A stretch of 64,000 nt of DNA from Piromyces finnis finn (lineage: Eukaryota > Fungi > Neocallimastigomycota). The notes beneath the pieces were generated by a model. The model was not told the DNA's origin, did not search any database, and saw only the letters and a list, made by a program, of their open reading frames with translations. Below, one piece after another: positions 17,909-50,727 of the stretch. Made by a program: the position numbers and the translations under genes. The stretch is from positions 1-64,000 of the forward strand of contig MCFH01000079.1 in the NCBI GenBank assembly GCA_002104945.1, given 5' to 3'. The first letter of the stretch is position 1. The number at the start of each line of letters is the position of its first letter.

Positions 17909-19753
17909 ATGCGTTTCTCTCTTGTTCTTGGTATTGTTCTTTCCTTATCTTTAAATGCTATTGGTTTACCAGTTCCAGACGAAGAACCAACTCAAGTTGG
18001 TATTGAACCAATTGCTCCAATGGCCGGTCCAATGGATGCCCCAGTAGTTCCATCTACTAAGACTTTACCATCAAAGGTTTTACCAGAAGCTACTATTGTT
18101 CCAGTTGCTCCAGAAGCTCCAATTGCTCCAGAAGCTCTAGTTGCCCCAGAAACTCCAGCTCCAAAGGCTTTACCAGAAGCTCCAGTTGCTCCAGAAACTC
18201 CAGCTCCAAAGGCTTTACCAGAAGCTCCAGTTGCTCCAGAAGCTCCAGCTGCTCCAGTTGCTCCAACTACTAAGACTTTACCAGCTAAGGCTTTACCAAC
18301 TGTTGCTGGTGAATTAACTGCTGAAGAAGATGTTGAAGCTCCAGTTGCTCCAGAAACTCCAGCTCCAAAGGCTTTACCAGAAGCCCCAGTTGCTCCAGAA
18401 ACTCCAGCTCCAAAGGCTTTACCAGAAGCTCCAGTTGCTCCAGAAGCTCCAGTTGCTCCAGAAGCCCCAGTTGCTCCAGAAACTCCAGCTCCAAAGGCTT
18501 TACCAGAAGCTCCAGTTGCTCCAGTTGCTCCAGTTGCTCCAGAAGCTCCAGTTGCTCCAGAAGCTCCAGCTGCTCCAGTTGCTCCAACTACTAAGACTTT
18601 ACCAGCTAAGGCTTTACCAACTGTTGCTGGTGAATTAACTGCTGAAGAAGATGTTGAAGCTCCAGTTGCTCCAGAAACTCCAGCTCCAAAGGCTTTACCA
18701 GAAGCTCCAGTTGCTCCAGAAGCCCCAGTTGCTCCAGAAACTCCAGCTCCAAAGGCTTTACCAGAAGCTCCAGTTGCTCCAGAAGCCCCAGTTGCTCCAG
18801 AAACTCCAGCTCCAAAGGCTTTACCAGAAGCTCCAGTTGCTCCAGAAGCTCCAGTTGCTCCAACTACTAAGACTTTACCAGCTAAGGCTTTACCAACTGT
18901 TGCTGGTGAATTAACTGCTGAAGAAGATGTTGAAGCTCCAGTTGCTCCAGAAACTCCAGCTCCAAAGGCTTTACCAGAAGCCCCAGTTGCTCCAGAAGCC
19001 CCAGTTGCTCCAGAAACTCCAGCTCCAAAGGCTTTACCAGAAGCCCCAGTTGCTCCAGAAACTCCAGCTCCAAAGGCTTTACCAGAAGCTCCAGTTGCTC
19101 CAGAAGCTCCAGTTGCTCCAGAAACTCCAGCTCCAAAGGCTTTACCAGTTGCTCCAGTTGCTCCAGAAGCTCCAGCTGCTCCAGTTGCTCCAACTACTAA
19201 GACTTTACCAGCTAAGGTTTTACCAACTGTTGCTGGTGAATTAACTGCTGAAGAAGATGTTGAAGCTCCAGTTGCTCCAGAAACTCCAGCTCCAAAGGCT
19301 TTACCAGAAGCTCCAGTTGCTCCAGAAGCTCCAGTTGTTCCAGAAACTCCAGCTCCAAAGGCTTTACCAGAAGCTCCAGTTGCTCCAGAAGCTCCAGTTG
19401 TTCCAGAAACTCCAGCTCCAAAGGCTTTACCAGAAGCTCCAGTTGCTCCAACTACTAAGACTTTACCAGCTAAGGCTTTACCAACTGTTGCTGGTGAATT
19501 AACTGCTGAAGAAGATGTTGAAGCTCCAGTTGCTCCAGAAACTCCAGCTCCAAAGGCTTTACCAGAAGCTCCAGTTGCTCCAGAAACTCCAGCTGCTCCA
19601 GAAACTCCAGCTCCAAAGGCTTTACCAGAAGCTCCAGTTGCTCCAGAAGCCCCAGTTGCTCCAACTACTAAGACTGTTGTTATCAAGACTACCAAGACTT
19701 TACCAGTCATTAAGACTACCAAGACTTTACCAACTATCGTTGAAACCAACTAA
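17909..19753 (+). CDS. Secreted Pro/Ala/Glu-rich repeat protein P1 (614 aa)
   Basis: Signal peptide [19 protein letters not shown]|LPVP. Five higher-order repeats start TTKTLPAK(A/V)[16 protein letters not shown] and are filled with APVAPE / TPAPKALPE subunits. No Cys, TM segment or GPI tail. Confidence 0.9.
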
Positions 19754-20239
19754 ATCAAAAGAATATTATTATAAATTAGAAGATTATAAGTTTTTTAATA
19801 TAAATATTAATTATATAATAAATAAAGCTTAATATTAAAATTTTAAAAATAATTAATATTAATGATATAATTAATTGCTATGTTATTAATGAAAATCTTG
19901 TATTATTAAAATAAAGATATTTTTTTTTTTTACTTTAACTATTAAGTAACTTTATTATTTTATTAATAAAAAATAGAAAATAAATAATATTATAAATGTT
20001 TCTTAATAAAAAGTAAAGTAAAATATAAAAGATAAAAATTAAATCAAATGTAATATATTAAAAAATTAAAATAAAAAGTTAAAACATTAATCCTATTTTA
20101 TATTTATTGAAATAAAGTGTTCTTTTTTATGATTTAAAACATTAATTTGATCTTTTATGTTCAACATAAAAACTATTTTTAACATTTTATAAAAAAAAAG
20201 TTAGTTAGAATGGTAATAACCTATTCGCTTTAATAATCA

Positions 20240-21200
20240 AGAGCTTACAATTATAATTTTTAAAACCATAGTATTGAATTTATATGTAGCTGTCAACAAA
20301 GATCTCATATTATGCTCCATTATTTAGTTCTAATAAAGTTAGGTTTATCGTCAATTGAAAAGCTGTAAGACAGGCCAGCACATCCGATAGAGATCATAAT
20401 TTTGTTAGCAAAGATATATTCTTTACAGTGAAGAAACAGTAAGACAGGCCAGGAGGGCCAGCGCAACCAATGGAGATCATAATTTTGTTCCATGACAAAA
20501 TTTTGATCTTTGACTTGGTGTCCTATTGGAAGTCAAATACAATTATTATACTTTAGTATGATAGTGGCTTTCTTACTTTAATTAAAAGTACTAGAATACA
20601 TTATACCCAATTTTTATTCATTTGTGTTTATTTAAACATATTTTTTTTTATTTTTATTTTTAATTTCAATTCTATTTTTTTATAGCATGTATTACAATTT
20701 TAATTAAATTAATAATAATGTTTAAAAATATTTGATGCCGTTAAAAAAAAAAAAAAAAAACAATTCTTTACAGCACAACTAATTTAGAATAAAAAAATAA
20801 TAAACTAGAATACATTATACCCAATTTTTATTCATTTGTGTTTATTTACCAGAAGTTGTTCCATATTTTTTTCAATTTTTATTTTTAATTTTAATTTTAT
20901 TTTTTTATAGCATGTATTATAATTTTAATTAAATTACTAAAGTTTAAAAAAAAATATTCTTTATAGCACAACTAATTAATAATAATAAAAAAAAATAAAC
21001 TAGTTATTTTTACAAAGGAGTGATTAGGTATCAAGTAAACGATTCTTATTCTCTATACTTAAAGAATGGAATATTAATTAAGATATAAATATAGATGAAG
21101 TTAAATCAGAAATCCTTGTTATCCCAAATTATTATGCTTCAGGGTCTGATGATAATTTCGATTGAATTTTATGGTTCTTAGTCAAATATATGTAGAATTT
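20240..21200 (+). mobile_element. Old degenerate LINE debris surrounding a younger truncated copy, plus a ~190-bp duplicated 3' UTR segment
   Basis: 20305-20343 reads SYYAPLFSSNKVR (intact: SYFAPLLGSNKAR). 21064-21150 reads EWNIN*DINIDEVKSEILVIPNYYASGSD (intact: EWDINQDISIDEVKSAILTTPNYKASGPD). About 20806-21003 repeats the distal 3' UTR and flank of about 20590-20805. Confidence 0.8.
20429..20760 (+). mobile_element. Very short 5'-truncated copy (copy D) of the same LINE
   Basis: Begins TGAAGAAACAGTAAGACAGGCCAGGAGGG (end of ORF), continues through the 3' UTR and ends ...GATGCCGTT-A18 (20743-20760). TSD ATTCTTTACAG at 20418-20428 and 20763-20773. Confidence 0.9.
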
Positions 21201-22455
21201 ACTATGACTATTCTAAATAATTCAACAGACAATATATAAAGTAACTTAAACGATCATTCAGTAACTCAATATTGTTAAAATAATATGAAATAGATAAAAC
21301 TCATAACTTTGATTCTATACAAATTGTGACATTTTTAAAAATTTAATATAATTATTAAAAATTACTTTTAATACTTTTTATTCTATTAAATCCCGTTTTA
21401 ATAGTTTTAAGTACCTATATGTCTTGATTATGCCGAATATATATATATATATTAATTACAAAAATATTTATTATCATTGATAGACATAAAATATACTTAA
21501 AACTACTCAATTATATTTACATTATATTTATATTAATAAAATAAAATTAGTCATAATGGTAAAAATTAAATTATATTAATATCATTTTCTAGTTATGCCA
21601 ATAAATTAAAAAATTTAACATATTAATATAAAAATCTATCATTTTTTTGTGTAATTTATTGAACAATTTATATTCTTTTTTGGAATATTAAATAAATAAA
21701 AAAAATAATAAAATTAAAAACATATATATTACATAGTAAGCCTAAGCATGGATGAATAGATAATTTTTATCTTATTGAAAGTATTCAATATTATAAATAA
21801 TTATTATACATATAAGGATTATTAAAAATTAAAGTATATGAAAATTATTATTTAAAGAATAAATATTAAAGTTTGATAATGTAACATTGAAAATCATTTT
21901 TTCATTAATATATGAGATTATCATGTAATATATAATTCAACCAATGAAATTCTTTATAATACGGTCATATTTTTTTGTTTTACATTATATATCATAATGT
22001 TTATCATTAATATCTTTTTTTTATTATAACTAAAATTTGATATTATCAAAAATTAATATAAATTTTAATTTAAATAAATTAAATTATTATAAAAAAAAAA
22101 AAAGGAAAATTATTTTATAACAACTTTTTTTCTTCTTTTCTTACTTTCTTTATTTTTTTTTTCTTTTTTAATTCATCATTTTCAATTAGTTTAATAATAA
22201 TAACATTATTATTATTATTATTATTATTATTGAATAGTGTTAACTTACAAATTCTTGTATATTGTAATCTTTAATACTTATAAACCTATTTTATAATATT
22301 TTTTTTTTAAAAAAAACAAAAAACATCTAATAAAAACCCAAACTATAAATATATATATTTATTTTAGTGTTTTTGTACATATAGACATATAGACATAGCA
22401 TAAACGATACAATAATATATAAAATCCAAATATTAAGTATTATAAAAAGATCAAA

Positions 22456-23445
22456 ATGAATTATACATCTATTTTATTCCTATTTATACTTTCTTTATCT
22501 TCAATAATTTCTTGTTTACCAATCCCATGTGAATCTAGTGGTGGTAAAACTGTATCCAGTATTCCAAAATCTATTACAACAAAATCCATTTCAACAAAAT
22601 CACTTCCAGAAGGTTCTTCAAAGTCAATTTCTTGTGAATCAGGATGTGGTAATTCTGGTAGTAAAACTATTCCATCTTCACCAAAGTCAGTCTCAGAAGG
22701 ACCATCAACTAAATCCACTCCATGTGATTCAAACTCTGAATGTGGTAGTAAAACTATTCCATCTTCACCAAAGTCAGTCTCAGAAGGACCATCAACTAAA
22801 TCCACTCCATGTGATTCAAACTCTGAATGTGGTAGTAAAACTATTCCATCTTCACCAAAGTCAGTTTCAGAAGGACCATCAACTAAATCCACTCCATGTG
22901 ATTCAAACTCTGAATGTGGTAGTAAAACCATTCCATCTTCACCAAAGTCAGTCTCAGAAGGACCATCAACTAAATCCACTCCATGTGATTCAAATTCACC
23001 AAAATCTATTCCAAACGGTCCATCCACTAAATCAATTCCATGTGATTCAAACTCTGAATGTGATAATTCAGGTAGTAAAACTATTTCAACTCCTCCAACA
23101 AAATCTAATGAAACAAAATCTCTTCCAGAAGAAAGTAGTCCATCTCCTAAATCAATTCCAGAAGGTTCATCTTCTAAATCCCCACCACAAGTTCCAGCTC
23201 CATCCGATGATATTACCATCCCATCTGTAGAAAATGGAAACGGTAATAATATTAATGCCGGAGGCTCTGATGATTCTGAAAATTCAGCTGAAGAAGAAGG
23301 TAATACATATGGAGATAATAATCAAATAGAACAATCAGCTGAAGAAGAAGAAGTCGTTGATGTTAATTCCAATATTTCAATTGAAGAAGTGCAATCAGAT
23401 GATGAAGGTGAAAGTATTATTGGTATTGTTAACAATGCTAATTAA
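22456..23445 (+). CDS. Secreted Ser/Pro/Cys repeat protein P2 (329 aa) with acidic tail
   Basis: Signal peptide MNYTSILFLFILSLSSIISC|LPIP. About 4 copies of an 87-bp/29-aa repeat GSKTIPSSPKSVSEGPSTKSTPCDSNSEC. C-terminal SAEEE and SDDE blocks. Confidence 0.9.
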   Translation: MNYTSILFLFILSLSSIISCLPIPCESSGGKTVSSIPKSITTKSISTKSLPEGSSKSISCESGCGNSGSKTIPSSPKSVSEGPSTKSTPCDSNSECGSKTIPSSPKSVSEGPSTKSTPCDSNSECGSKTIPSSPKSVSEGPSTKSTPCDSNSECGSKTIPSSPKSVSEGPSTKSTPCDSNSPKSIPNGPSTKSIPCDSNSECDNSGSKTISTPPTKSNETKSLPEESSPSPKSIPEGSSSKSPPQVPAPSDDITIPSVENGNGNNINAGGSDDSENSAEEEGNTYGDNNQIEQSAEEEEVVDVNSNISIEEVQSDDEGESIIGIVNNAN

Positions 23446-24832: not shown

Positions 24833-25094
24833 ACATCTTACTAAACCTATCAAAAAGTAACTTCATAGAGCTACTATTGATAGAAATTATTTTAGCATGA
24901 AAAGATAAAAGTCTTTCTTTTATCTATGGAACATAAGATTTTGATGAACTGCAAATTTGTTCATTCCCAATGTCTTTATTTCGCCATTATTAATTTGTAG
25001 TTTATCATATAAGTTAAATTTTACTAAAGAGAAACATAAAAAATATAGTTACTATAATTTTTTTTTTTTAAACTTCTATATTAAGGAGTAATAA

Positions 25095-25100
<6 letters not shown>

Positions 25101-25138
<38 letters not shown>

Positions 25139-28100
25139 GGCATCAAATATTATAAACTTTATTATTAATTTAATTAAAATTATAATATATGTAATAAAAA
25201 ATTAAAAAATAAAAATAAAAATAAAAAAAATATGTTTAAATAAACACAAATGAATAAAAATCGGGTATAATGTATTCTAGTAATTTTAATTAAAGTAAGA
25301 AAGCCACTATCATACTAAAGTATAATAATTGTATTTGACTTCCAATGGGACACCGAGCCAAAGATCAAAATTTTGTCATGGAACAAAATTATGATCTCCA
25401 TTGGTTGCGCTGGCCCTCCTGGCCTGTCTTACTGTTTCTTCAGCATTGACGCTCTTGGATGTTGCTTCAAACCTTTTGAACATTGACCATTGCTGGCCAA
25501 TAGCAAAAGGCATGATTTTGGTTAGAAGTTCCGCAGTTACCGTCAAGAATGGTGTTCCTTCGTTAGTACCAGATTGAATCTGACGCTTACAAAGTTCTTT
25601 CCATTCCCTTGAATTGTAATTAATATTGTTAAAACTTCTTCCCCCAAGAAGGAATTTAAATATTTTACTGCACACACTAGAATAATCATACACATTAATA
25701 TTCACCGGATTATTAGAACTATTACTATCATTAACTAAATTACTATCTAAATTAGAATTATTATCTTCACTATTGCTATCATTACTAGTATTATTATTTC
25801 TATAACTACTATTGTTATTATTACTATTTCTATTATTACTATTGTTACTATTACTATTGTTACTATTACTATTGTAATTATTATTACTACTATTGTTACT
25901 ATTACTATTAATGTTATTGCTATCTCTACTGATATTAACATTTTCATTATTATTGATAGGACTATTGGAATTACGTTGACTGAAAAAATTTAGTAGCTGG
26001 ACTATGGAATCATAATGTTTAATACGGATATCTCTAAATGTTGGACAATCTAATAACCAATGTTTAATACTTTGATCTCCACACTTGCAACATGGACAGT
26101 AGTTAGGACAAACTGGATCAACAAATTTGGCAGCTTTGGCAACTCTAGCATCCAACTTGTATCCGCTTCTTGCTTTCAATAGCCAGTAGAAGCCATAGGC
26201 AAACTCTGGGTACTCATAACATAATTTAATGAAATCTTTAGTTTCAATAAATTTATTATCATCATAATATTGCGCTTTGATTGAATTCCCTTTGAGATCT
26301 TTCCAATAAAAGTTTTTAATTGCTTTAACATCTTCATGTTTCTTTAATTTTTTATCAAGTGTCCTACTTGATTTGCACCACGTGTATTTTCTAAATTTAG
26401 GAATGTAATTGACAAGGTGTGAGATAATACAATTTGAGTTTTTCCATTTGTTAAAACATCTAACCTGAGCTAACGCACATTTGGCTGACAATGGAGGAAT
26501 ATTCAAATCTTTTGAAATAGAGTATAAAGATATAAACGATACAGCTTTATGAACTCCGGCAACCCATCGTATTCCTTTGTTAACATGCTTCTGAGCAATC
26601 CTAGACCTAGCTTTGTTGGATCCAAGTAATGGTGCAAAGTATGAAACTCTGCTAATCACTTGTGAGTTAAGTACTAGCTTTTTGAAAGGAATAGGAATAT
26701 TAGGATTTCTTAAGAATTTACTGACTGAGAAAAGCCCTTTCAAAACCTTGTTATTAAGAGCTTTAATTACTGGTTTAAGGGACAGATTCTTATCAAATGA
26801 ACACCAAGATAAGTGTAGCAGTCAGTAGTTGGAATGGGTTGTCCTGCTAAGTAAAATGTTGGATCTCTCTTGTTCTGATTTTCTATTGATTCAGGACGAA
26901 TCACCATCGTTGAACATTTCTGTATACCAAATTCCATTTCATTATACAATGCCCATTCATTAACTCTTCTAAGCATCTTTTTTAAGTATCCTCTTGTTGG
27001 AGCACAAATAACTATATCATCTGCAAAAAGTCCACCACAGCATCAAGTGTCACCTAAACTGACTCCGAGATCTTCACACTCTTTAAATATATCATTAATA
27101 AAGAGATTAAAGAGAATAGGAGAAAGAGGGCAACCTTGACGGACTCCTTTCTTCACATCAAAAGATTTCGAGAATTGTCCATCTAATTTGACATTAGCCT
27201 TAGATGTTAAATATAAATTTTTGATGAATTGCAAACTCTTACCTCGGATTCCTAAACAATCTAATTTATGGAGAATATTACCGATTGGGACTGAATCGTA
27301 TGCTTTCCTGAGATCTAAAAAGGCCAAATATGTCTCTTTATTATCTAATTGACGTCTACGGCATATTTCTTGGATTGAAATGAAAAGACTAATACTTTCT
27401 TCCTTTTTTCGAAAACCAAATTGTTCAGGTCTAATGAAATTATTCTTTAAACCATATTCTGAGATTCTAGTGGTGACAATTTTGGAAATCAACTTAATAC
27501 CATTATTGATAAGTGATATACCTCGATAGTTATCACAATCTGTCAAATCACCCTTCTTAGGAATAGAAACAATACTGGATTCATTCCATGAGTTGGGGAA
27601 ATCTCCATCCCAAATACGGTTGAATAATTTAAGAATAAAATTTAAACCATGAGCATCATTATCTGAAGTAGTATTACCAGAAGAATTATTATCTGTAGCA
27701 TTATTAGAATCATTACTTGATGGAACTAATGCTTTGTAAAATTCAATTGGAATACCATCCGGACCTGATGCTTTATAATTTGGAGTAGTGAGGATAGCTG
27801 ACTTGACTTCATCAATACTAATATCTTGGTTGATATCCCACTCATCAAGCATAGGAAGTGAAAAACGTTTATTCGTTGGTTCTTCATACCAATGCTCCAA
27901 ATCAAGACTTACACCACTTGGGTCTGATGCAAGATTTTCGAAATGATCATGCCACACATCTAGTTGTTCTTCCGTAGCAACAACTAATTCTCCATTTTTA
28001 TTTTTAATTGGTTGAGCAATAAAGAAAGAATCTTTTCCAATTTTTGCAGTTTTCTTGATCCATTTCCAGGCCTTCTTAGGATTATGACTCTTCATATACT

Positions 28101-30699
28101 CACATCCTGTTTTAATCCAATGAAGATATTCTTGCTTCCTAAATTCATTACATCTTTTGTGGATGTAATCAATGAGTTTACGGTAGATTTTAATTCTTTT
28201 AATAAATTCATCTATATCATAAATTCTTTCTTTTTTAAATCTCTTATACAACTTCATTTTGATTTTTTGAAGATTAAAAATTTGTTGTGAAATATGAAAT
28301 GAAGACTTTATAACATTATTAGCTGAGGTAATACTGAGCTCGTCTGCAATTGAAAAAGCAGTTGAAGTAAACTCTTTGGAAAGTTCATCTGTAGAAACAT
28401 TAGGATCGTTGAATTTTGCTGAAAGAATTTGGAATTTATTATGACTGAGAATAGATTCCTTTTCCTCAATACATTTTAATCTATTCCATTTCATAATTTT
28501 CTTAGGAACATTAAAGTCATTAGAAAAATCTTCCATAGGAATAATTTTACCATTAATAAGAAGTGGCTTATGGTCTGATACAGGATAAAAATTATTTATA
28601 AATGATCCTGAGTGAATAAGATCTTTCATCTTCGAATTGATAAGAGCATGGTCAATGTCGGAAGATTGATCACCTCGAGTCCAAGAGATAGTAGACCCTC
28701 TAAGCGGAAGAATTTCCCAATCTCCTAATCCATTAGTTGATAACCAGTTGGATAATTTTACTTTAGACATATTAAAATCACCAACAAGAATCGATGGATG
28801 GGATGAATGAGTTTGTAACCACAAGCAAACTTCTAACTTTGCATGATCAACATAGATGTTGTGATGACTATGAGGCATATAAACATTTCCAATCGAGCAT
28901 TTGAATCTATTCCAAAGACTAAAAGTATAAATAGAAATAATATACTTTCCAGAGAAGTTTTCAAGTGAGGCTTGACACGAATTGTGAAAACCTAAATATA
29001 AACCTCTCATTCCCGGAACTGATTCGTCAGCTTTCTTGAAAAAGTGTCTATAGTTTCGCAAAGTAACACGACAAGGATAATCTGTATTCGAACCAGAACC
29101 ATTACCAGTTTCTTGGAAACATAAGAATAATGGTTTGAAAATAGCTGTGAAATAGCTAATACTATCTCTCTTTTCGTGATTCCACCCATTGGTGTTCCAA
29201 CTAAGACAAAAAGAAAAGTTATCAGGCTTGTTGGATGAGGAAGAATCGTTGCTATTATTATTATTATTATTAAAGTCATCATTATTAATGGATGATGCAT
29301 CAGAGGAATAAGTTGAACTATTACTAGATGGCTGTGAAACTGAAGAACTATCAACTATTGAACTGTTATCAGAGTTGATAGAGCTATTAGAATTAATTGT
29401 TGAATGTTGAGATTGAAATTGTGTTTGCTGTATATCTGGAATATTTTCATGATGGGAAACTTGTTGAAGATCTTGTTGAAGATCTTATTGAAGATCGGAT
29501 TGTTGATGAGATTGTTGAACTGATTGTTGAAATGATTGTTGAATAGAATGTTGATGTTTATTAGAAACTAAAATTTTACGTTTGAGAGTGGAAAAAGGGT
29601 ATTTGTGATTCCTTCTACTACGAGCTGAAAAGGAAATTGAGGTAACTGAAAGTTTCTTCTTTAACATGTGTAAGATTTTAATACAATCTTTCGATGAACC
29701 ATGAACCTTGACTAAGAAAAAGTGATCATTGAAAGTCTGAAAATATTTAACACTAATAACTGAATTAAATTTATCTTCTAGAATAACCTCGAGTTTTTCC
29801 CATAGCATATTTACTGACCATGATCGAATACCACGGATAAAGAAGGAGCGAATATCATCTAAGGGGATACCATAAGACCGGGTACCACGTCTGATATAAT
29901 TCTTATCTTTAATATAAAGGACTGACATGATAATTAATTCTAATTAAAAAATATTGAATATAAAATAAATACTAATAAAAATTATAAATATAACGTATAT
30001 GGAAAAAAAATCTGTCTCTCTCTCTCTTCTTAAAAGTACTGGATAGTACAAAAATTGTTATGATGCTTTGTTTAAAGTTTCTTATTTTTTGAATTCTAGT
30101 TGTTAATTTTTTTTTAAAAATTCTAGTTTTGGTTTGTTGTTAGTAAATTCGATTCGCTTTTTGACACTAAACTTGTTTGACTTTACTTTTCATTAAATAT
30201 TTAAATTGGTAAAAAATTTGAATCAAGAATGTCGACACCAGAAAGCTTGTGAATAGTATTTTTACATGATGTAGAGTGAATCAGTCTCTTACAAGAAACA
30301 ATACAACAATAGCTACATGAATATAAAAATACAATGCAAATGCTAAAGTTGACTACATTGGATTCTTACAAGAGAAGAGTAGTACTACATGAATACATGA
30401 ATAAAAGAAAAAATACAGCAACAAAATGTATTACTCTTCTAATTAAATACTATACAAACTTACCTGAATATCAAACATTCAACTTATTCATCAAATACTT
30501 AAATTCGATGAATAAAATGTTTTTTAATCGCTCAGTACCATGAGCTTAGTCCTAATAATTTTCCCTTAAAGACTAACCAAGCATCCATTGCGCAATGCTT
30601 GGATTTAATTCTTTCTACTCTCTCAGTACCATGAGCATGAGTAGACCCCCTCGAGAAACTACATTTATTAAATAAATGAAGGCACGTTCCCAAGAGGGT
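25101..30699 (-). mobile_element. Full-length but inactivated LINE (copy A)
   Basis: Colinear and highly similar to 38872-44444. 13-bp TSD GTAATAAATTAAT (25088-25100, 30700-30712). Lesions: TAA at 29485-29487, CGA>TGA at 27043-27045, and a 1-bp deletion near 26800 (ATGAACACC versus ATGGAACACC). Confidence 0.97.
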
Positions 30700-31211
30700 G
30701 TAATAAATTAATCCTTGTATTTATTATACATTTATTATGAAAAAGGGTAAAAAGGTCTTCAACAAAACCATTAATTTTAATACACTAATTTGATAAAAAA
30801 AAAAAAAAAAAAAGAACTATATTAAATTTTTATTATTAATAATAGATTGTAAAACAAAAAAATTTTTATTAATTTTTTTATAGAGTAATATCAACAAATA
30901 TATAAACTTCAAAGAGAATAAGAGAAAAAAATATTGCTAAAAAAGTTTTATTTATTTACTAATAATTATAATTACATTTTATTATATTTTTTTTTTAAAA
31001 ATAAAAAAAGATAATAATGTAGCTATATAATTGAATTATAAAAATATAACATTATAAAGAAAAAAAAAAAAAGATACATTTTTTTTAATAAATAAATATG
31101 AAATTGATAGTGTTATTACATTAAGATGAATAAGTAAAAAAAAAAAATTCTTTTAATTTCAAAACCTATGGATTAAATTAAATATTATAAATTTTTTGGT
31201 TTATTGTCAAT

Positions 31212-38866: not shown

Positions 38867-38871
<5 letters not shown>

Positions 38872-38917
<46 letters not shown>

Positions 38918-41900
38918 GGCATCAAATATTTTAAACTTTATTATTAATTTAATTAAAATTATAATACATGTAATATAAAAATTAAAATAAAATAAAAATA
39001 AAAAAAATATGTTTAAATAAACACAAATGAATAAAAATCGGGTATAATGTATTCTAGTAATTTTAATTAAAGTAAGAAAGCCACTATCATACTAAAGTAT
39101 AATAATTGTATTTGACTTCCAATGGGACACCGAGCCAAAGATCAAAATTTTGTCATGGAACAAAATTATGATCTCCATTGGTTGCGCTGGCCCTCCTGGC
39201 CTGTCTTACTGTTTCTTCAGCATTGACACTCTTGGATGTTGCTTCAAACCTTTTGAACATTGACCATTGCTGGCCAATAGCAAAAGGCATGATTTTGGTT
39301 AGAAGTTCCGCGGTTACCGTCAAGAATGGTGTTCCTTCGTTAGTACCAGATTGAATCTGACGCTTACAAAGTTCTTTCCATTCCCTTGAATTGTAATTAA
39401 TATTGTTAAAACTTCTTCCCCCAAGAAGGAATTTAAATATTTTACTGCACACACTAGAATAATCATACACATTAATATTCACCGGATTATTAGAACTATT
39501 ACTATCATTAACTAAATTACTATTTAAATTAGAATTATTATCTTCACTATTGCTATCATTACTAATATTATTATTTCTATTATTGTTATTATTACTATTG
39601 TTACTATTACTATTGTTACTATTACTATTGTTATTACTACTATTGTTACTATTACTATTAATGTTATTACTATCTCTACTGATATTATCAATTTCATTAT
39701 TATTGATAGGACTATTGGAATTACGTTGACTGAAAAAATTTAATAGCTGGACTATAGAATCATAATGTTTAATACGGATATCTCTAAATGTTGGACAATC
39801 TAATAACCAATGTTTAATACTTTGATCTCCACACTTGCAACATGGACAGTAGTTAGGACAAACTGGATCAACAAATTTGGCAGCTTTGGCAACTCTAGCA
39901 TCCAACTTGTATCCGCTTTTTGCTTTCAATAGCCAGTAGAAGCCATAGGCAAACTCTGGGTACTCATAACATAATTTAATAAAATCTTTAGTTTCAATAA
40001 ATTTATTATCATCATAATATTGCGCTTTGATTGAATTCCCTTTGAGATCTTTCCAATAAAAGTTTTTAACTGCTTTAACATCTCCATGTTTCTTTAATTT
40101 TTTATCAAGTGTCCTACTTGATTTGCACCACGTGTATTTTCTAAATTTAGGAATGTAATTGACAAGGTGTGAGATAATACAATTTGAGTTTTTCCATTTG
40201 TTAAAACATCTAACCTGAGCTAACGCACATTTGGCTGACAATGGAGGAATATTCAAATCTTTTGAAATAGAGTATAAAGATATAAACGATACAGCTTTAT
40301 GAACTCCGGCAACCCATCGTATTCCTTTGTTAACATGCTTCTGAGCAATCCTAGACCTAGCTTTGTTGGATCCAAGTAATGGTGCAAAGTATGAAACTCT
40401 GCTAATCACTTGTGAGTTAAGTACTAGCTTTTTGAAAGGAATAGGAATATTAGGATTTCTTAAGAATTTACTGACTGAGAAAAGCCCTTTCAAAACCTTG
40501 TTATTAAGAGCTTTAATTACTGGTTTAAGGGACAGATTCTTATCAAATGGAACACCAAGATAAGTATAACAATCAGTAGTTGGAATGGGTTGTCCTGCTA
40601 AGTAAAATGTTGGATCTCTCTTGTTCTGATTTTCTATTGATTCAGGACGAATCACCATCGTTGAACATTTCTGTATACCAAATTCCATTTCATTATACAA
40701 TGCCCATTCATTAACTCTTCTAAGCATCTTTTTTAAGCATCCTCTTGTTGGAGCACAAATAACTATATCATCTGCAAAAAGTCCACCACAGCATCGAGTG
40801 TCACCTAAACTGACTCCTAGATCTTCGCACTCTCTAAATATATCATTAATAAAGAGATTAAAGAGAATAGGAGAAAGAGGGCAACCTTGACGGACTCCTT
40901 TCTTCACATCAAAAGATTTCGAGAATTGTCCATCTAATTTGACATTAGCCTTAGATGTTAAATATAAATTTTTGATAAATTGTAGACTCTTACCTCGGAT
41001 TCCTAAACAATCTAATTTATGGAGAATATTACCGATTGGGACTGAATCGTATGCTTTCCTGAGATCTAAAAAGGCCAAATATGTCTCTTTATTATCTAAT
41101 TGACGTCTACGGCATATTTCTTGGATTGAAATGAAAAGACTAATACTTTCTTCCTTTTTTCGAAAACCAAATTGTTCAGGTCTAATGAAATTATTCTTTA
41201 AACCATATTCTGAGATTCTAGTGGTGACAATTTTGGAAATCAACTTAATACCATTATTGATAAGTGATATACCTCGATAGTTATCACAATCTGTCAAATC
41301 TCCCTTCTTAGGAATAGAAACAATACTGGATTCATTCCATGAGTTGGGGAAATCTCCATCCCAAATACGGTTGAATAATTTAAGAATAAAATTTAAACCA
41401 TGAGCATCATTATCTGAAGTAGTATTACCAGAAGAATTATTATCTGTAGCATTATTAGAATCATTACTTGATGGAACTAATGCTTTGTAAAATTCAATTG
41501 GAATACCATCCGGACCTGATGCTTTATAATTTGGAGTAGTGAGGATAGCTGACTTGACTTCATCAATACTAATATCTTGGTTGATATCCCACTCATCAAG
41601 CATAGGAAGTGAAAAACGTTTATTCGTTGGTTCTTCATACCAATGCTCCAAATCAAGACTTACACCACTTGGGTCTGATGCAAGATTTTCGAAATGATCA
41701 TGCCACACATCTAGTTGTTCTTCCGTAGCAACAACTAATTCTCCATTTTTATTTTTAATTGGTTGAGCAATAAAGAAAGAATCTTTTCCAATTTTTGCAG
41801 TTTTCTTGATCCATTTCCAGGCCTTCTTAGGATTATGACTCTTCATATACTCACATCCTGTTTTAATCCAATGAAGATATTCTTGCTTCCTAAATTCATT

Positions 41901-44444
41901 ACATCTTTTGTGGATGTAATCAATGAGTTTACGGTAGATTTTAATTCTTTTAATAAATTCATCTATATCATAAATTCTTTCTTTTTTAAATCTCTTATAC
42001 AACTTCATTTTGATTTTTTGAAGATTAAAAATTTGTTGTGAAATATGAAATGAAGACTTTATAACATTATTAGCTGAGGTAATACTGAGCTCGTCTGCAA
42101 TTGAAAAAGCAGTTGAAGTAAACTCTTTGGAAAGTTCATCTGTAGAAACATTAGGATCGTTGAATTTTGCTGAAAGAATTTGGAATTTATTATGACTGAG
42201 AATAGATTCCTTTTCCTCAATACATTTTAATCTATTCCATTTCATAATTTTCTTAGGAACATTAAAGTCATTAGAAAAATCTTCCATAGGAATAATTTTA
42301 CCATTAATAAGAAGTGGCTTATGGTCTGATACAGGATAAAAATTATTTATAAATGATCCTGAGTGAATAAGATCTTTCATCTTCGAATTGATAAGAGCAT
42401 GGTCAATGTCGGAAGATTGATCACCTCGAGTCCAAGAGATAGTAGACCCTCTAAGCGGAAGAATTTCCCAATCTCCTAATCCATTAGTTGATAACCAGTT
42501 GGATAATTTTACTTTAGACATATTAAAATCACCAACAAGAATCGATGGATGGGATGAATGAGTTTGTAACCACAAGCGAACTTCTAACTTTGCATGATCA
42601 ACATAGATGTTGTGATGACTATGAGGCATATAAACATTTCCAATCGAGCATTTGAATCTATTCCAAAGACTAAAAGTATAAATAGAAATAATATACTTTC
42701 CAGAGAAGTTTTCAAGTGAGGCTTGACACGAATTGTGAAAACCTAAATATAAACCTCTCATTCCCGGAACTGATTCGTCAGCTTTCTTGAAAAAGTGTCT
42801 ATAGTTTCGCAAAGTAACACGACAAGGATAATCTGTATTCGAACCAGAACCATTACCAGTTTCTTGGAAACATAAGAATAATGGTTTGAAAATAGCTGTG
42901 AAATAGCTAATACTATCTCTCTTTTCGTGATTCCACCCATTGGTGTTCCAACTAAGACAAAAAGAAAAGTTATCAGGCTTGTTGGATGAGGAAGAATCGT
43001 TGCTATTATTATTATTATTAAAGTCATCGTTATTAATGGATGATGCATCAGAGGAATAAGTTGAACTATTACTAGATGGCTGTGAAACTGAAGAACTATC
43101 AACTATTGAACTGTTATCAGAGTTGATAGAGCTATTAGAATTAATTGCTGAATGTTGAGATTGAAATTGTGTTTGCTGTAGATCTGGAATATTTTCATGA
43201 TTGGAAACTTGTTGAAGATCTTGTTGAAGATCTAGTTGAAGATCGGATTGTTGATGAGATTGTTGAACTGATTGTTGAAATGATTGTTGAATAGAATGTT
43301 GATGTTTATTAGAAACTAAAATTTTACGTTTGAGAGTGGAAAAAGTGTATTTGTGATTCCTTCTACTACGAGCTGAAAAGGAAATTGAGGTAACTGAAAG
43401 TTTCTTCTTTAACATGTGTAAGATTTTAATACAATCTTTCGATGAACCATGAACCTTGACTAAGAAAAAGTGATCATTGAAAGTCTGAAAATATTTAACA
43501 CTAATAACTGAATTAAATTTATCTTCTAGAATAACCTCGAGTTTTTCCCATAGCATATTTACTGACCATGATCGAATACCACGGATAAAGAAGGAGCGAA
43601 TATCATCTAATGGGATACCATAAGACCGGGTACCACGTCTGATATAATTCTTATCTTTAATATAAAGGACTGACATGATAATAAATTCTAATTAAAAATA
43701 TTGAATATAAAATAAATACTAATAAAAATTATAAATATAACGTATATGGAAAAAAAATCTGTCTCTCTCTCTCTTCTTAAAAGTACTGGATAGTACAAAA
43801 ATTGTTACGATGCTTTGTTTAAAGTTTCTTTTTTTTGAATTCTAGTTGTAAATTTTCTTTAAAAATTCTAGTTTTGGTTTGTTGTTAGTAAATTCGATTC
43901 GCTTTTTGACACTAAACTTGTTTGACTTTACTTTTCATTAAATATTTAAATTGGTAAAAAATTTGAATCAAGAATGTCGACACCAGAAAGCTTGTGAATA
44001 GTATTTTTACATGATGTAGAGTGAATCAGTCTCTTACAAGAAACAATACAACAATAGCTACATGAATATAAAAATACAATGCAAATGCTAAAGTTGACTA
44101 CATTGGATTCTTACAAGAGAAGAGTAGTACTACATGAATACATGAATAAAAGAAAAAATACAGCAACAAAATGTATTACTCTTCTAATTAAATACTATAC
44201 AAACTTACCTGAATATCAAACATTCAACTTATTCATCAAATACTTAAATTCGATGAATAAAATGTTTTTTAATCGCTCAGTACCATGAGCTTAGTCCTAA
44301 TAATTTTCCCTTAAAGACTAACCAAGCATCCATTGCGCAATACTTGGATTTAATTCTTTCTACTCTCTCAGTACCATGAGCATGAGTAGACCCCCTTGAG
44401 AAACTACATTTATTAAATAAATGAAGGCACGTTCCCAAGAGGGT
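38872..44444 (-). mobile_element. Full-length, apparently intact non-LTR retrotransposon (LINE copy B, 5573 bp)
   Basis: 14-bp TSD TTAAAAATATGAAA (38858-38871, 44445-44458), poly(T) 38872-38914, one uninterrupted ORF, and a ~770-bp 5' UTR whose end (...CAAGAGGGT) coincides with the end of homology to copy A. Confidence 0.98.
39153..43676 (-). CDS. LINE polyprotein, 1507 aa: putative RRM, Q/S/N linker, APE endonuclease, reverse transcriptase, CCHC zinc knuckle, Asn-rich tail
   Basis: APE motifs SWNTNG, FQETG, GNVYMP, VGDFN, SSDIDHAL, SDHKPL. RT motifs KASGPDGI, PKKGDLTDCDNYRGISL, FLDLRKAYDSV, GVRQGCPLSPILFNLFI, LFADD, YTYLG. Knuckle CPCCKCGDQSIKHWLLDC. The RRM call (RSFFIRGI...HFFLVKV) is weaker. 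Confidence 0.97.
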   Translation of the reverse strand: MSVLYIKDKNYIRRGTRSYGIPLDDIRSFFIRGIRSWSVNMLWEKLEVILEDKFNSVISVKYFQTFNDHFFLVKVHGSSKDCIKILHMLKKKLSVTSISFSARSRRNHKYTFSTLKRKILVSNKHQHSIQQSFQQSVQQSHQQSDLQLDLQQDLQQVSNHENIPDLQQTQFQSQHSAINSNSSINSDNSSIVDSSSVSQPSSNSSTYSSDASSINNDDFNNNNNSNDSSSSNKPDNFSFCLSWNTNGWNHEKRDSISYFTAIFKPLFLCFQETGNGSGSNTDYPCRVTLRNYRHFFKKADESVPGMRGLYLGFHNSCQASLENFSGKYIISIYTFSLWNRFKCSIGNVYMPHSHHNIYVDHAKLEVRLWLQTHSSHPSILVGDFNMSKVKLSNWLSTNGLGDWEILPLRGSTISWTRGDQSSDIDHALINSKMKDLIHSGSFINNFYPVSDHKPLLINGKIIPMEDFSNDFNVPKKIMKWNRLKCIEEKESILSHNKFQILSAKFNDPNVSTDELSKEFTSTAFSIADELSITSANNVIKSSFHISQQIFNLQKIKMKLYKRFKKERIYDIDEFIKRIKIYRKLIDYIHKRCNEFRKQEYLHWIKTGCEYMKSHNPKKAWKWIKKTAKIGKDSFFIAQPIKNKNGELVVATEEQLDVWHDHFENLASDPSGVSLDLEHWYEEPTNKRFSLPMLDEWDINQDISIDEVKSAILTTPNYKASGPDGIPIEFYKALVPSSNDSNNATDNNSSGNTTSDNDAHGLNFILKLFNRIWDGDFPNSWNESSIVSIPKKGDLTDCDNYRGISLINNGIKLISKIVTTRISEYGLKNNFIRPEQFGFRKKEESISLFISIQEICRRRQLDNKETYLAFLDLRKAYDSVPIGNILHKLDCLGIRGKSLQFIKNLYLTSKANVKLDGQFSKSFDVKKGVRQGCPLSPILFNLFINDIFRECEDLGVSLGDTRCCGGLFADDIVICAPTRGCLKKMLRRVNEWALYNEMEFGIQKCSTMVIRPESIENQNKRDPTFYLAGQPIPTTDCYTYLGVPFDKNLSLKPVIKALNNKVLKGLFSVSKFLRNPNIPIPFKKLVLNSQVISRVSYFAPLLGSNKARSRIAQKHVNKGIRWVAGVHKAVSFISLYSISKDLNIPPLSAKCALAQVRCFNKWKNSNCIISHLVNYIPKFRKYTWCKSSRTLDKKLKKHGDVKAVKNFYWKDLKGNSIKAQYYDDNKFIETKDFIKLCYEYPEFAYGFYWLLKAKSGYKLDARVAKAAKFVDPVCPNYCPCCKCGDQSIKHWLLDCPTFRDIRIKHYDSIVQLLNFFSQRNSNSPINNNEIDNISRDSNNINSNSNNSSNNNSNSNNSNSNNSNNNNNRNNNISNDSNSEDNNSNLNSNLVNDSNSSNNPVNINVYDYSSVCSKIFKFLLGGRSFNNINYNSREWKELCKRQIQSGTNEGTPFLTVTAELLTKIMPFAIGQQWSMFKRFEATSKSVNAEETVRQARRASATNGDHNFVP

Positions 44445-45125
44445 TTAAAAATATGAAAAGGACAATTATAAAGTATAACAATAGCGTTTGTCTTTCAATG
44501 GGACAAAAATTCAATACCAAAATTTGTCAAGAGAGGTACAAAATTATTGGTTGTGCTGATAATATTTAATATCTCATTGTTCATACTACTATCGACGACC
44601 CATTTCATTTTTTTATTGTTATTACTTTAAATTCTATTAATCTACACTTTTGGATATTTTTTTAAAGTAATTTTCAAAAAAAGTATTAAATGTGTCATAC
44701 AGTATTAAAAAAAAATTTTTTTTTTTTTTAATTGTAAATTATAAATAATGAAATAGTTTATTTATATTCTGAAAACACAATTTTTACATACATTTTTATA
44801 TTAATAATATACATTTAATTATATTTTCTAAATATATTTTATAATAGTAATAAAGCTTTCAATATGAAAAAGAAAAGTTATATAAAATAATTAATTGATT
44901 TATTAATTATAATTATATAATAAAAATATTTGTTGTCTTATATTATGATAGGATAGTACATATCTATATTAAATAATTAATTATTATAAATTAAAAGAAT
45001 AATAAATTATTTATATTACATTTATACATTACTGTCTTATTAATAAATAATATAAATATTTAAATATAAAAAAAAAAGTTTTAAAGATTTAAGATTTCAT
45101 TGTTCATGATGAACCTATTTTATAT

Positions 45126-47045: not shown

Positions 47046-48313
47046 TTTTGTTTTACCAAAAGTTGAATAAAAATATTTGCTTTAAATGGATAGTCGATAT
47101 ATTAAGTAAAATTTTTATATAATTTTTTATAATTATATATAATTTTTATTTACAAGATTATAATTGTTTTTTTAATTAAATTATTTAAATAAATTATAAT
47201 ATATACAAATATTATATATGAAAAAAGAATTTATATACAAAAGTTATAATTATTAAAAAGAAAAGTAAATGATATACTTTTGATACAACTTTTTAATAAT
47301 TAATTTTATATAACAACGATTTTTATTTTTTTTATTTTACTTTTCAGTAATTATAATATTATTTTTAAAACTTGAAATGACTGAATTAAAAAAAAAAAAA
47401 AAAACTTTGTGTATTTATATTGCTTTTAAAATATACAGACATATTTGCTACAGTTAAAAATAAAAAATGGCACCAAAATTAATAATTTCTAATAATAAAC
47501 TTTTTTAATTTATTTATTAAATTGAAAGTTAATATAATCAATTATTATTTTAATAAATATTAATAACTTTAATTAATAAATATAAATAATAAATAATTAA
47601 AATAATAAAAAAGAATTAAAAAAAAAAAAAAAAAAAATGGAAAAAAGAAAGGTATCTTGTAAATAATATTAGATGATTACGGCAGTCTTTATTTATAATA
47701 ATATATTAATTGTAGTCAAAAATGAGGATAAAATAGACTTAATGTATGTATATTAAAATTGAATAATGTAGTATTTATAATAGTATATTAAAATTGAATA
47801 ATTGTAAAATTCTAATAATTCTTTATAATATCTTTTATTTTATTAAATATATTGAAAGAGCGGTAAAGGTATTTTTAATAAATTATTAAAAATACAGGTA
47901 AAAGAAGGGTTTATTATAAAAAATAATTATTTAATAAAAGAATACTATATATAATAAAAGAATATTAATTAAATAATAAATCTACTTATTTTAAAAATAA
48001 TTACTATGGAAATATGTAATAATTCAAATAATCCTAAATCAAAGTTAATAGCTTTTTTCAATATAAAGAGAAAACGCCATAATTTTCTATTTTAATTTCA
48101 TTAATTGTTAATTTCTTATTATAGTATAAATTAGGTAAAGCATAGAAAATAGGATATAAATTAATAGAGATTAAAATTATAAAAAAGAAATTTGTTAAAT
48201 TAAAATTAACTATATTATTAATCAGTACTACATTATAAAAAATACAAGTTTTAACTATCTTCATATCACTAATAGTTTTCTGCTATTATTGTTGTTGCTG
48301 TTATTACTTATTA

Positions 48314-48405
48314 AAGGTATCTTTTCATTTATATCTTTAAAATGATACTGTTTTTTTTTTTTTTTTTTATAAGTCATTTTAAAGATATAAATGAAAAGAT
48401 ACCTT
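48314..48405. repeat. Perfect 32-bp inverted repeat around a 28-nt T-rich spacer
   Basis: AAGGTATCTTTTCATTTATATCTTTAAAATGA (48314-48345) and its exact reverse complement (48374-48405). Confidence 0.95.
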
Positions 48406-49824
48406 CAATAACTTTTTTTTTAATTACTAAAAAAAATAATTATTATTTAAGAGAAAATATTCAATAAAATAAAAAAGTTTTATAGATGCCTATTAAAAAT
48501 TACACCGTTGGAACTTTTTATTCAAGTTTTATGAATGATACATTGTGTAAGCAAGCTGTAAAAATTCAAAAATTCTTTCTTATTATCATTTTATTTAATC
48601 CAATAATTTCTATTTGTTCCAACTTTTGAAATTAATAGTGAATTGATATAAAAGATAAAATAAAGAGAGCGGCAACAATTTGTTATTTTAACATTAAAAA
48701 CTAGTTGAATAGAAAAACGGCATATATAATATAATATAATTTAATATTATTGGCTCTTTTCAAAATGTTTAATTTATATCTTAATTCTTCAAAAACAATA
48801 GTTAATCTATTTTAAATTTTATTATAATATAAGGTTTAAATAGAAAATTAATTATGACCAATAGTATATCTTTGGAATTTAATATATCATATTTAAAATT
48901 TATACAATAATTTGAACAAATTTGGAAAAATTAATAAATTGTATGATACTGAATAAAAAAAAAAAAAAAAAAGAAAATTAATAAGATTAAGGATAGTTAA
49001 AATATCCTTTTTTTTTATAAAAGTATTTATATAATATGATATGATTTATATTTCATATTCTTCATAATTTCCATTTTTATTCAATTTGTTGTGATAGTAG
49101 TAGAAATAGCATGTTGAATAATTGATTGTTGTACATTTTATTAAAATGCCATTAATAGAAATAAGAAAAGAAAATATATACATATATTTGATAACTATAA
49201 GTTTTGTTTTTGGATTTTCATTATAAAAGTTTGAATTTGATACCTATAAATAATATATATAACGTACGACTTTATAAAAATGCATAAAATGTTGTAATTA
49301 AAAAATGTTTTTTTTTTTTTTATATGTGATATCACAATAAAATTATTCATCTTAATTGTAAAAGTAACACATTTTATTTATGATTTATGGTAGAATTATA
49401 AAATAAATTTCAAAAAAAAAAACTTTTTTTTTTTGATTTTTAATAATATATTAATTGTAAAACTACAAATATTTAAAGAACAAAAAGTTTTAAAAATAGT
49501 AATGCAAAAATTTTATTTTATAAAAGTAATGCTTTATTAATAAATTTATTTAATAAATATAATACAAAAAATAGATAATAATAATAATAAAAAAAAGGAA
49601 TAAAAGGATAGTTTCTTTTTTAAAATTTATTACAAAATTATAAATCAAAAAATTATTTCTTATTTCATTAAAATAATAATTTTAGAACAATAATAATAAA
49701 TAAATAGATTATATATACATGAAATATGTACTATAAATTTCATTTTTATATACTTTAATTATTATTTTTCCAAATGAATCGTCTAATTTTTTTCTTGCTA
49801 TATAATATAATCACTTTCTATTAT

Positions 49825-50727
49825 TTAAATCTTTTTTGGTGGAGTAATATTGTTATTACTGGTGACACAAACACCGTTAACACAACCTCCTCCAGTAGCA
49901 TTAGTGGTTTTTGGGGTTGGTGTAACTTTAGTTGAAGTTGCTTTTGGAGCAGCTGATGGAACAGCAGTGGTTACTGACTTTGGAGCAGCTGATGGAACTG
50001 GAACTTGAGTTGACTTTGGTTGAGATTTAGCTACTGAAGAGGTAGATACTTTGTTGTTATTGGCAACTGGTTGAGGATTTTCATTTGGAACAGTAGTTAC
50101 TTCATCCTTACATTCACCGTTGGTACAATTTGTAGTAGTAGTAATAGTATTTTTACCATCGTTCTTAGAAACCCATTTCCAACTCCATGTACCACCTTCA
50201 GTTGGTTCAGTTGGTGGTTGGTAATTTGGATTTGGAGTAGTAGTAACTTCATCAGTACATTGACCATTAGAACAAGTAGTAGTTGTTGTAATAATTTCCT
50301 TACCATCTGGACTAATACTTGATTTCCAACTCCATGTACCACCTTGAGTAGGTTCAGTTGATTGAGCTGGGGCTGGGGCTGGGGCTGGAGCTACTGGAGC
50401 TGGATTACTTGGTACTTCTGGTAAAGACTTTGCTGGTAATGTGGCTGGAGTATCAGTAGATAATGTTGGAACTTCTTTTGTTGTTGGAGCTTCTGGAGCA
50501 GCTGTAGTTTCAGAAGGAGTTGTATCAATTACTGGTGGATTTGGGGCATCTGGAATAGTTTTAGTAGTAGGTCCCTCAGTTTGGAGGTTAACTTCAACAC
50601 CAGCATCACCAATACTTTCTGAACTATTAATGGCTTCAACAGCTGCAACTGGTGGAACAGGTAAACCAGTAACAAAAGATTTTAATGATATAGCAACAAC
50701 AGCAGCTAAGACAAATGAGTAACGCAT
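49825..50727 (-). CDS. Secreted Thr/Pro-rich protein P6 (300 aa) with two Trp/Cys modules
   Basis: Signal peptide MRYSFVLAAVVAISLKSFVTG|LPVP. PTTKTIP and LPAKSLPE motifs, two GGTWSWK...DGK...C(S/T)NGxC.DEVTT modules, and a terminal CVNGVC. Confidence 0.9.
   Translation of the reverse strand: MRYSFVLAAVVAISLKSFVTGLPVPPVAAVEAINSSESIGDAGVEVNLQTEGPTTKTIPDAPNPPVIDTTPSETTAAPEAPTTKEVPTLSTDTPATLPAKSLPEVPSNPAPVAPAPAPAPAQSTEPTQGGTWSWKSSISPDGKEIITTTTTCSNGQCTDEVTTTPNPNYQPPTEPTEGGTWSWKWVSKNDGKNTITTTTNCTNGECKDEVTTVPNENPQPVANNNKVSTSSVAKSQPKSTQVPVPSAAPKSVTTAVPSAAPKATSTKVTPTPKTTNATGGGCVNGVCVTSNNNITPPKKI

Follow-up and report, generated by a model that had tools for sequence, protein, structure and literature searches.

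A short motif shared by clustered repeat-protein genes

Six intronless open reading frames (ORFs), designated P1 to P6 (Table 1), lie at positions 17,909 to 50,727 of a 64,000-nt stretch of the Piromyces finnis genome (assembly GCA_002104945.1, contig MCFH01000079.1, positions 1 to 64,000 of the forward strand; hereafter the window). They raise the question of why five predicted secreted proteins built from dissimilar repeats should embed the same short motif, K-[TSA]-[LIV]-P. An initial annotation had proposed that the six genes form an undescribed system of their own, in which the motif was kept by selection as an enzyme-recognition site while the surrounding repeats turned over. Our comparisons indicate that the motif extends beyond this cluster, as a lineage-wide "linker word" shared by three or more unrelated kinds of protein in two genera of gut fungi, among them xylanases, in which it forms tethers. 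The best explanation, to which we assign a probability of roughly 0.55, is that the locus carries a tandemly duplicated, fast-evolving family of acidic, disordered, mucin-like secreted proteins that are "all tether", interrupted by long interspersed nuclear elements (LINEs) and probably O-glycosylated.

All six ORFs are present and uninterrupted at the places and on the strands first described, and the earlier motif tallies proved exact on recount. P1 contains 29 copies (TKTLP x8, PKALP x17 and AKALP x4), P2 nine (SKTIP x4, TKSLP x2, PKSIP x2 and TKSIP x1), P3 14, P5 eight (PKSVP x6 and PKSIP x2) and P6 two (TKTIP and AKSLP), while P4 contains none, offering nothing but VKTMP at its signal junction. 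Across the whole window, 62 of the 65 six-frame matches to the motif fall in frame within these five proteins, and three occur elsewhere. Composition-preserving shuffles yielded a mean of 0.06-0.57 copies per protein against the 2-29 observed, so that the motif is commoner than expected for low-complexity proteins rich in Lys, Thr and Pro. The excess amounts to 30- to 130-fold in P1, P2, P3 and P5; for P6 it is about 14-fold, and the two sites of this protein only equal the maximum reached in its own shuffles.

Raw counts of this kind are inflated by tandem amplification, and the number of distinct sequence contexts in the cluster is 35; in P3, all 14 sites occur in different contexts. The codons of the motif residues also vary, with Ser encoded by AGT or TCN and Leu by TTA, CTT or CTC. 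A logo built from 261 unique contexts in 17 proteins has Thr (46%) or Ser (30%) before an invariant Lys, followed by Thr (80%), Ser (10%), Ala (3%), Glu (3%) or Asp (2%), then Leu (51%), Ile (36%) or Val (13%), and an invariant Pro. Thr is thus favoured over Ser by 8:1 at the second motif position, where acidic residues make up 5% of contexts. The flanks are uninformative and the spacing between copies is free (5-30 aa). The logo of the cluster proteins is the same as that of the GH10 and GH11 xylanase linkers described below.

Conservation of the motif at orthologous sites

A phmmer search of 1.8 billion representative sequences with residues 1-215 of P3 recovered only four real relatives, namely an orthologue with 59% identity (P0007), two sequences representing a homologue with 40% identity (P0010 and P0020), and a GH11 xylanase of Neocallimastix californiae. 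When P3, P0007 and P0020 were aligned over residues 40-205, 32 of 48 motif columns were invariant, compared with 16 of 118 other columns (Fisher test, 4e-11), and the Lys was retained at 11 of 12 motif sites. This difference therefore points to selection on the motif itself. Thr has been replaced by an acidic residue at some sites, KTLP becoming KDLP in P0007 and K-E-[VI]-P repeats occurring in P0020.

A related cluster is found in Piromyces sp. E2 beside the same pdxK gene, with orthologues of P1 and P2 adjacent to each other. The E2 orthologue of P1 (L004:4582-6426, minus strand) begins with the same 45 residues and contains TKTLP, PKA[VI]P and TKVVP, the P2 orthologue carries PKSIPEGPS units and the same acidic tail, and a further protein of 441 aa differs in its N-terminal repeat but has an acidic tail and five units of the form [ST]K[ST]IP. 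The synteny is partial, with a gene order that differs between the two species and an E2 assembly that contains gaps.

Two further features of the P3 relatives were observed. The homologue represented by P0010 and P0020 was found on contigs of ~2.4 kb in six Joint Genome Institute (JGI) samples; in all six independent assemblies (L006-L011) the contig ends lie close to the 718-codon ORF of P0020, within ~170-330 nt on its upstream side and 26-180 nt on its downstream side, which suggests that these contigs are transcripts of an expressed P3 homologue, although a poly(A) tail would be indistinguishable from genomic A/T runs. In addition, P0007 and P0020 conserve the last ~60 residues of P3 (31212-31450, minus strand), a region around P-I-Q-A-P-D-L-K ... 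T-Q-S-E-Y-E-D-Y, whereas P3 is otherwise repeat-like. This region, which has no Pfam match, is possibly a small folded or interaction domain.

The same motif in xylanase linkers and other secreted proteins

In N. californiae (contig MCOG01000020.1), a genomic ORF at L013:4001-7669 encodes a protein of 1222 aa with a GH11 domain at residues 49-231 and a CBM1 at residues 1190-1217. The two domains are joined by a tether of ~950 aa in which the motif occurs 107 times, within units of the form (GGAAS)KTLP and (G)KTLP, and which has almost no acidic residues. The public model of this GH11 protein covers 460 aa, most of the uninterrupted ORF of 1222 codons being spliced out and the CBM1 lost. Motif arrays are probably mis-modelled systematically in gut-fungal annotations, and gene models can splice them out, so repeat proteins of this type are under-counted.

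A degenerate DNA pattern scan of metagenome contigs listed at least 120 loci, ~110 of which are chance or out-of-frame matches, making the scan unfit for frequency estimates. It nevertheless brought up a GH10 enzyme with a K-T-[ILV]-P linker of ~600 aa and a CBM1 (P0021), a predicted secreted protein of ~860 aa (L020 and L074) that has a Glu-rich tail and bears the motif 59 times, and a predicted secreted protein of 250 aa (L039) that combines 16 AAAKTLPAST units with a Cys-rich end. Among named sequences, the P0021 GH10 domain is closest to one from Neocallimastix sp. 'constans', at 79% identity. In a set of 47 gut-fungus-like GH10 proteins, the motif was counted 244 times, always in the ten proteins of the GH10-linker-CBM1 form, with 18-36 copies each, whereas the other 37 fungal GH10 proteins, mostly CBM10-dockerin forms, contain none; 76 mostly bacterial GH10 proteins contain three copies in 60,355 residues. 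The GH10-CBM1 relatives have catalytic domains 64-100% identical and linkers of (x)SKTLP-type units, and the repeat unit shifts even between close orthologues (GNSKTLP, GASKTLP, TKTLPNxxGGSKTLPSK and SKTIPS) while the word stays. The xylanase linkers, together with the P3 orthologue columns, bear out the earlier proposal that the motif is kept by selection amid repeat turnover.

These distributions bear directly on whether the word has any function at present. It could have none and be a relic, derived from a single short repeat in an ancestor and spread by replication slippage and gene duplication. Copies within one protein are indeed mostly recent tandem amplifications with near-identical DNA units; P1, P5 and P6 are paralogues, and the E2 orthologue of P1 shows decay of PKALP. 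However, the 261 distinct contexts, the encoding of the same residues by different codons, the conservation of orthologous sites between diverging flanks, and the constancy of the word across the GH10, GH11 and P3 families all argue against a relic, and we regard this origin as very unlikely.

The distributions also bear on the proposal of a cluster-specific system, which does not hold: the motif occurs in GH11-CBM1 and GH10-CBM1 linkers and in other secreted proteins, P4 is free of it, and the six genes share no upstream word. In the upstream comparison, no word was common to at least four of the six regions above control, in a test of low power on DNA of 9-15% GC.

Relationship to described repeat proteins

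The closest described counterpart is xylanase B of Neocallimastix patriciarum, for which the title of the original report gives a 455-residue linker with 57 octapeptide repeats (Black et al. 1994, Biochem J 299:381). Like this linker, the cluster proteins present a tandem short repeat with a K-T-L-P word in a secreted gut-fungal protein. The octapeptide unit reportedly reads X-S-K-T-L-P-G-G, in agreement with the GH10 relatives compared here. Tandem [S/T]-K-T-[L/I/V]-P repeats of the xylanase B type are present in P1, P2, P3, P5 and P6 and missing from P4. However, the array of xylanase B is an inter-domain tether of an enzyme, whereas in none of the six proteins does an array join a catalytic domain to a C-terminal binding or docking module, and neither catalytic domains nor known binding domains occur in the cluster. 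They also mix in unrelated repeats and acidic tails, and they use more Ser and Ala at the second motif position and more Ile and Val at the third. The cluster therefore consists of further secreted repeat or linker-type proteins that use the gut-fungal K-T-L-P word, a type that is already known. In the literature searched, which included the 1994 report by its title, we came across neither an account that treats the word as a conserved motif nor one of stand-alone proteins made of it.

The O-glycosylated linkers of fungal and bacterial cellulases, such as that of Trichoderma reesei Cel7A, as well as mucin-like domains, are likewise secreted, disordered, rich in Pro, Thr and Ser, repetitive, and quick to change in length and unit. 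The presumed role of Pro/Thr/Ser cellulase linkers is that of an extended, protease-shielded spacer. Such linkers keep their composition only, whereas the gut-fungal arrays keep a five-residue word with an invariant Lys and reach ~950 residues. The cluster proteins resemble mucins in their Pro/Thr/Ser-rich tandem repeats, the number and unit of which vary, with units differing between orthologues, and in having an N-terminal signal-like segment without a membrane anchor.

Plant extensins are also secreted, Pro-rich structural proteins with tandem repeats. Among extensin-type Ser-Pro(3-5) and Tyr cross-link units, only one SPPSPPSPPSPPSPP run was found, in P3, with no Y-x-Y, and the other proteins lack such a run. 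Extensin maturation depends on prolyl hydroxylation with O2, which is unavailable to a strict anaerobe. Pir (DGQ) repeats do not occur in the translations of the six ORFs. Several recognition sequences were also considered for the motif and set aside: it is not an SH3 class I ligand (K-x-hydrophobic-P-x-x-P), since the second Pro is not conserved and SH3 domains are cytosolic; the Trp spacing in the cluster is W-x-W and not the W-x-x-W of C-mannosylation; neither sortase LPXTG nor Kex2 dibasic sites match; and internal signal-peptidase-like sites are not preceded by a membrane segment.

Possible roles of the motif

Five of the proteins are largely built from [T/S]-K-[T>S,A]-[L/I/V]-P, the word of the Neocallimastix xylanase tethers, and we propose that it would serve the same purpose in both settings, which is to keep an extracellular chain extended, soluble and intact. 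An open conformation of the polyproline-like kind would be promoted by the Pro and the branched hydrophobic residue, while the flanking Thr and Ser may be O-mannosylated in the secretory pathway and thereby shield the chain from gut proteases. With one Lys per unit, positive charges would recur at regular intervals and could aid solubility or let the chain touch anionic polymers of the plant or fungal wall. The stand-alone "all-tether" proteins could then form a hydrated surface or matrix layer, or act as spacers that bear small modules such as those of P5 and P6. Gut-fungal carbohydrate-active enzymes are reported to be rich in Thr/Ser runs and heavily glycosylated, with homologues of PMT1-4 present in these fungi (Wilken et al., PMC6883316). 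Of the roles first suggested for the motif, O-glycosylation is the most plausible and the best fit to the sequences, and it fits better than typical Ser-directed kinases because Thr outnumbers Ser by 8:1 at the second position.

In the model that follows from the initial annotation, the motif would be recognised by an enzyme of its own, which modifies or cross-links the Lys or cuts the chain to release repeat peptides, and the six genes would encode a co-regulated, co-assembling extracellular coat or adhesive. The genes are indeed clustered, share the type of signal and the start of the mature chain, and are kept near pdxK in a second species; moreover, 29 of the 34 Lys residues of P1 lie within the motif, whose Lys, hydrophobic residue and Pro are strictly conserved. 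However, besides the use of the motif outside the cluster, its absence from P4 and the lack of a word upstream of at least four of the six genes, no processing or modifying enzyme was seen in the window (by Pfam searches of seven proteins, and by eye for other ORFs of at least 100 aa), in line with what had been reported. In addition, lysyl oxidase and lysyl hydroxylase chemistry requires O2, of which a strict anaerobe has none. Proteolytic release of repeat peptides fits poorly with a motif that occurs in intact enzyme tethers, and cleavage is unlikely as a general role because cutting at each motif would sever the CBM1. The secretome of N. patriciarum has four major proteins, one of which is xylanase B, found there in free form (PMC3177772), and cross-linking of Lys into the wall is likewise unlikely as a general role because it would immobilise such enzymes. 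A coat assembled in this way is accordingly improbable. What endures of the earlier interpretation is a functional motif under selection, for which glycosylation is plausible; the six-gene system does not endure.

By analogy with spore-coat assembly, the arrays might instead be multi-site phospho-acceptors of secreted gut-fungal kinases of the CotH type. CotB and CotG of Bacillus have Ser/Lys/Arg repeats that are phosphorylated by CotH (PMC7821199), and they resemble the cluster proteins in presenting tandem repeats of Lys and hydroxyl residues in extracellular assembly proteins. A Lys followed by Thr and a hydrophobic residue looks like a basophilic kinase site, and the change of Thr to Asp or Glu at sites of P0007 and P0020, a weak hint, is possibly phosphomimetic. 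However, the CotB and CotG repeats have no Pro or hydrophobic position, use Ser and not Thr, are bacterial and are linked to cotH, a linkage not seen for this cluster, whose repeats are based on Thr, Lys and Pro and are almost free of Arg, and so are not of the CotB/CotG type. The preference for Thr over Ser (80:10) is atypical of the known Ser targets of CotH, acidic residues replace Thr in only 5% of contexts, and there was no CotH match among the seven window proteins searched with Pfam, ORFs of at least 100 aa outside the cluster being judged by eye. Phosphorylation of this kind would thus appear to be a remote prospect.

A further possibility is that the arrays are multivalent or electrostatic binders, whose spaced Lys residues tether the protein to glucuronoxylan, pectin, the fungal wall or a receptor domain. 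Consistent with this, both enzyme classes that bear arrays are xylanases (GH10 and GH11), the GH11 tether has 107 Lys-bearing copies and almost no acidic residues, and the stand-alone proteins are block polyampholytes, in which an acidic tail accompanies the Lys arrays. However, the cluster proteins are net acidic (pI 4.1-4.8), electrostatics alone would need neither a hydrophobic residue nor a Pro at fixed offsets, and no partner domain was identified. Binding of this kind is therefore unlikely.

Several observations weigh against the protected, O-glycosylated tether that we favour. The commonest form in P1, K-A-L-P, has no hydroxyl group at the second position, and the E2 orthologue of P1 holds the motif more loosely, with K-x-[LIV]-P at 20 of 38 Lys residues, KAAP at four and KAP[EV] at ten. 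The conservation test involves three sequences and an aligner that may favour K..P registers, and the restriction of the motif to gut-fungus sequences in the searches made is based on one phmmer scan and on the matches listed in one pattern scan. No transcript evidence, in the form of transcript-derived contigs, was found for the six P. finnis genes. In addition, ordinary linkers conserve composition, and the strict conservation of the Lys, the hydrophobic residue and the Pro therefore hints at a specific reader that a tether role leaves unnamed. Such a reader is the core of the remaining alternative, in which [T/S]-K-T-[L/I/V]-P would be a genuine short linear motif with a single extracellular or secretory-pathway factor devoted to reading it, such as CotH kinases or a lineage-specific glycosyltransferase, so that tethers and "all-tether" proteins are co-modified into one surface matrix; we hold this to be tentative and rather unlikely.

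Long repeat linkers were described in gut-fungal xylanases three decades ago, and we found no explanation for this particular word. A word conserved position by position, together with whole secreted proteins made of it, offers a target for secretome mass spectrometry and enzyme engineering, and gut-fungal enzyme linkers and their modification affect heterologous expression.

Architecture and kinship of the six proteins

Kyte-Doolittle analysis places one hydrophobic segment in each of the six proteins, within residues 1-25, and small residues come directly after it. No further Kyte-Doolittle peak that could represent a membrane anchor was found in any of them, and the polar or acidic C-termini do not resemble a glycosylphosphatidylinositol (GPI) signal, which agrees with the related signal-like N-termini and the lack of transmembrane and GPI regions noted before. 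The predicted mature chains begin with hydrophobic-Pro-hydrophobic-Pro (or Tyr), that is, LPVP, LPIP, IPVY, MPVP, LPLP and LPVP, as do those of the E2 cluster proteins and of L020; the two X-Pro dipeptides could be a signature of dipeptidyl-aminopeptidase processing or of blocking of aminopeptidases. The mature chains are acidic (pI 4.1-4.8) and contain 10-33% Ser plus Thr and 2-26% Pro. Tandem Repeats Finder gave repeat periods of 5, 9, 17, 19 and 29 aa and a super-repeat of ~86-110 aa (15-330 nt overall), close to the lengths first given, the largest of which had been put at ~90-110 aa.

None of the six proteins gave a Pfam match to a catalytic domain, a CBM or a dockerin, and the only match was a compositional one to GETHR in P5. 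The statement that the proteins lack recognisable regions of these kinds thus stands as far as Pfam is concerned, but P5 and P6 do contain a foldable module. These two proteins share a common signal peptide (E 7e-8) and a module of ~38 aa that is present in two copies in each (P5, 46626-46928, minus strand; P6, 50080-50346, minus strand), with invariant W-S-W, D-G-K and C-x-N-G-x-C. AlphaFold2, run on an alignment of the four copies, predicted with confidence a three-stranded antiparallel sheet (predicted local distance difference test score, 87.7) with the alternate Trp residues on the first strand, and Foldseek returned no significant PDB match. On the basis of this model, the WSW module could be a small, aromatic-faced binding module. 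P1 and P5 have in common the longer unit ETPAPK[AS][LIV]P. Given the shared signal peptides, the shared units, the WSW module and the family-type N-terminus of P4, the cluster is best regarded as a set of diverged paralogues and not as six unrelated genes.

P4 is linked to other proteins at both its body and its tail. Just before the CBM1 of the N. californiae GH11 protein lies an Asn/Trp/Gly-rich stretch with N-S-W-W repeats (L013, ~7440-7560) that resembles the P4 body, and P4 may be a "linker-word" protein of a second type. In E2, the last 29 residues of a 341-aa protein (L001:1976-2998) are 79% identical to the P4 tail (E 2e-13). The shared segment (P4, 35917-36006, minus strand; E2, L001:2912-2998) ends in D-E-D-A-D-V-P-V-I-N and the bodies are otherwise unrelated; judged by this pair of sequences, it is a conserved C-terminal tag.

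Genomic setting

The features of the window are listed in Table 1. The public record calls P1, P3 and P6 as genes of identical lengths without a Pfam hit, and represents P2 by a spliced model of 300 aa; exact look-ups in a clustered protein collection returned none of the six proteins. The pdxK product is identical to the public protein at these coordinates of contig MCFH01000079.1, which is 204 kb long.

Table 1. Repeat-protein genes and other features of the 64-kb P. finnis window.
Feature	Position	Strand	Description
P1	17909-19753	+	614 aa; predicted secreted, acidic; Pro/Ala/Glu-rich repeats; 29 of 34 Lys within motif
P2	22456-23445	+	329 aa; predicted secreted, Ser-rich; 29-aa Cys-containing repeats; 9 motif sites; acidic C-terminal tail
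P3	31212-33068	-	618 aa; predicted secreted; 14 motif sites; acidic 17-aa repeats; one SPP run; conserved C-terminal region
P4	35917-36411	-	164 aa; predicted secreted; Asn/Trp/Gly-rich; motif-free; family-type signal and hydrophobic-Pro N-terminus
P5	45126-47045	-	639 aa; predicted secreted; two WSW/Cys modules, then 19-aa and 5-aa repeats; 8 motif sites (ETPAPKS[VI]P)
P6	49825-50727	-	300 aa; predicted secreted; 2 motif sites; two WSW/Cys modules; Ser/Thr/Pro/Lys-rich tail
pdxK	13582-14430	-	pyridoxal kinase gene, near P1
LINE, full length	38879-44451	-	between P4 and P5; outside the repeat-protein family; intact 1507-aa ORF (39153-43676) with endonuclease-like region and reverse transcriptase (RVT_1)
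LINE, second copy	25100-30706	-	between P2 and P3; outside the repeat-protein family; 98.5% identical to the full-length copy; ORF fragmented
LINE, 3'-end fragment	20429-20763	+	between P1 and P2; 94% identical; orientation opposite to the full copies
LINE, 3' fragment	8056-8644		LINE fragments of the window are 94-99% identical

The G+C content of the window outside genes is 14-20%. The initial account of the spacing between the genes was incomplete, having missed the intact LINE between P4 and P5 and the 3'-end fragment between P1 and P2. Judging from the identities among its copies, the LINE family is young and the repeat-protein cluster is a recent target of its insertion.

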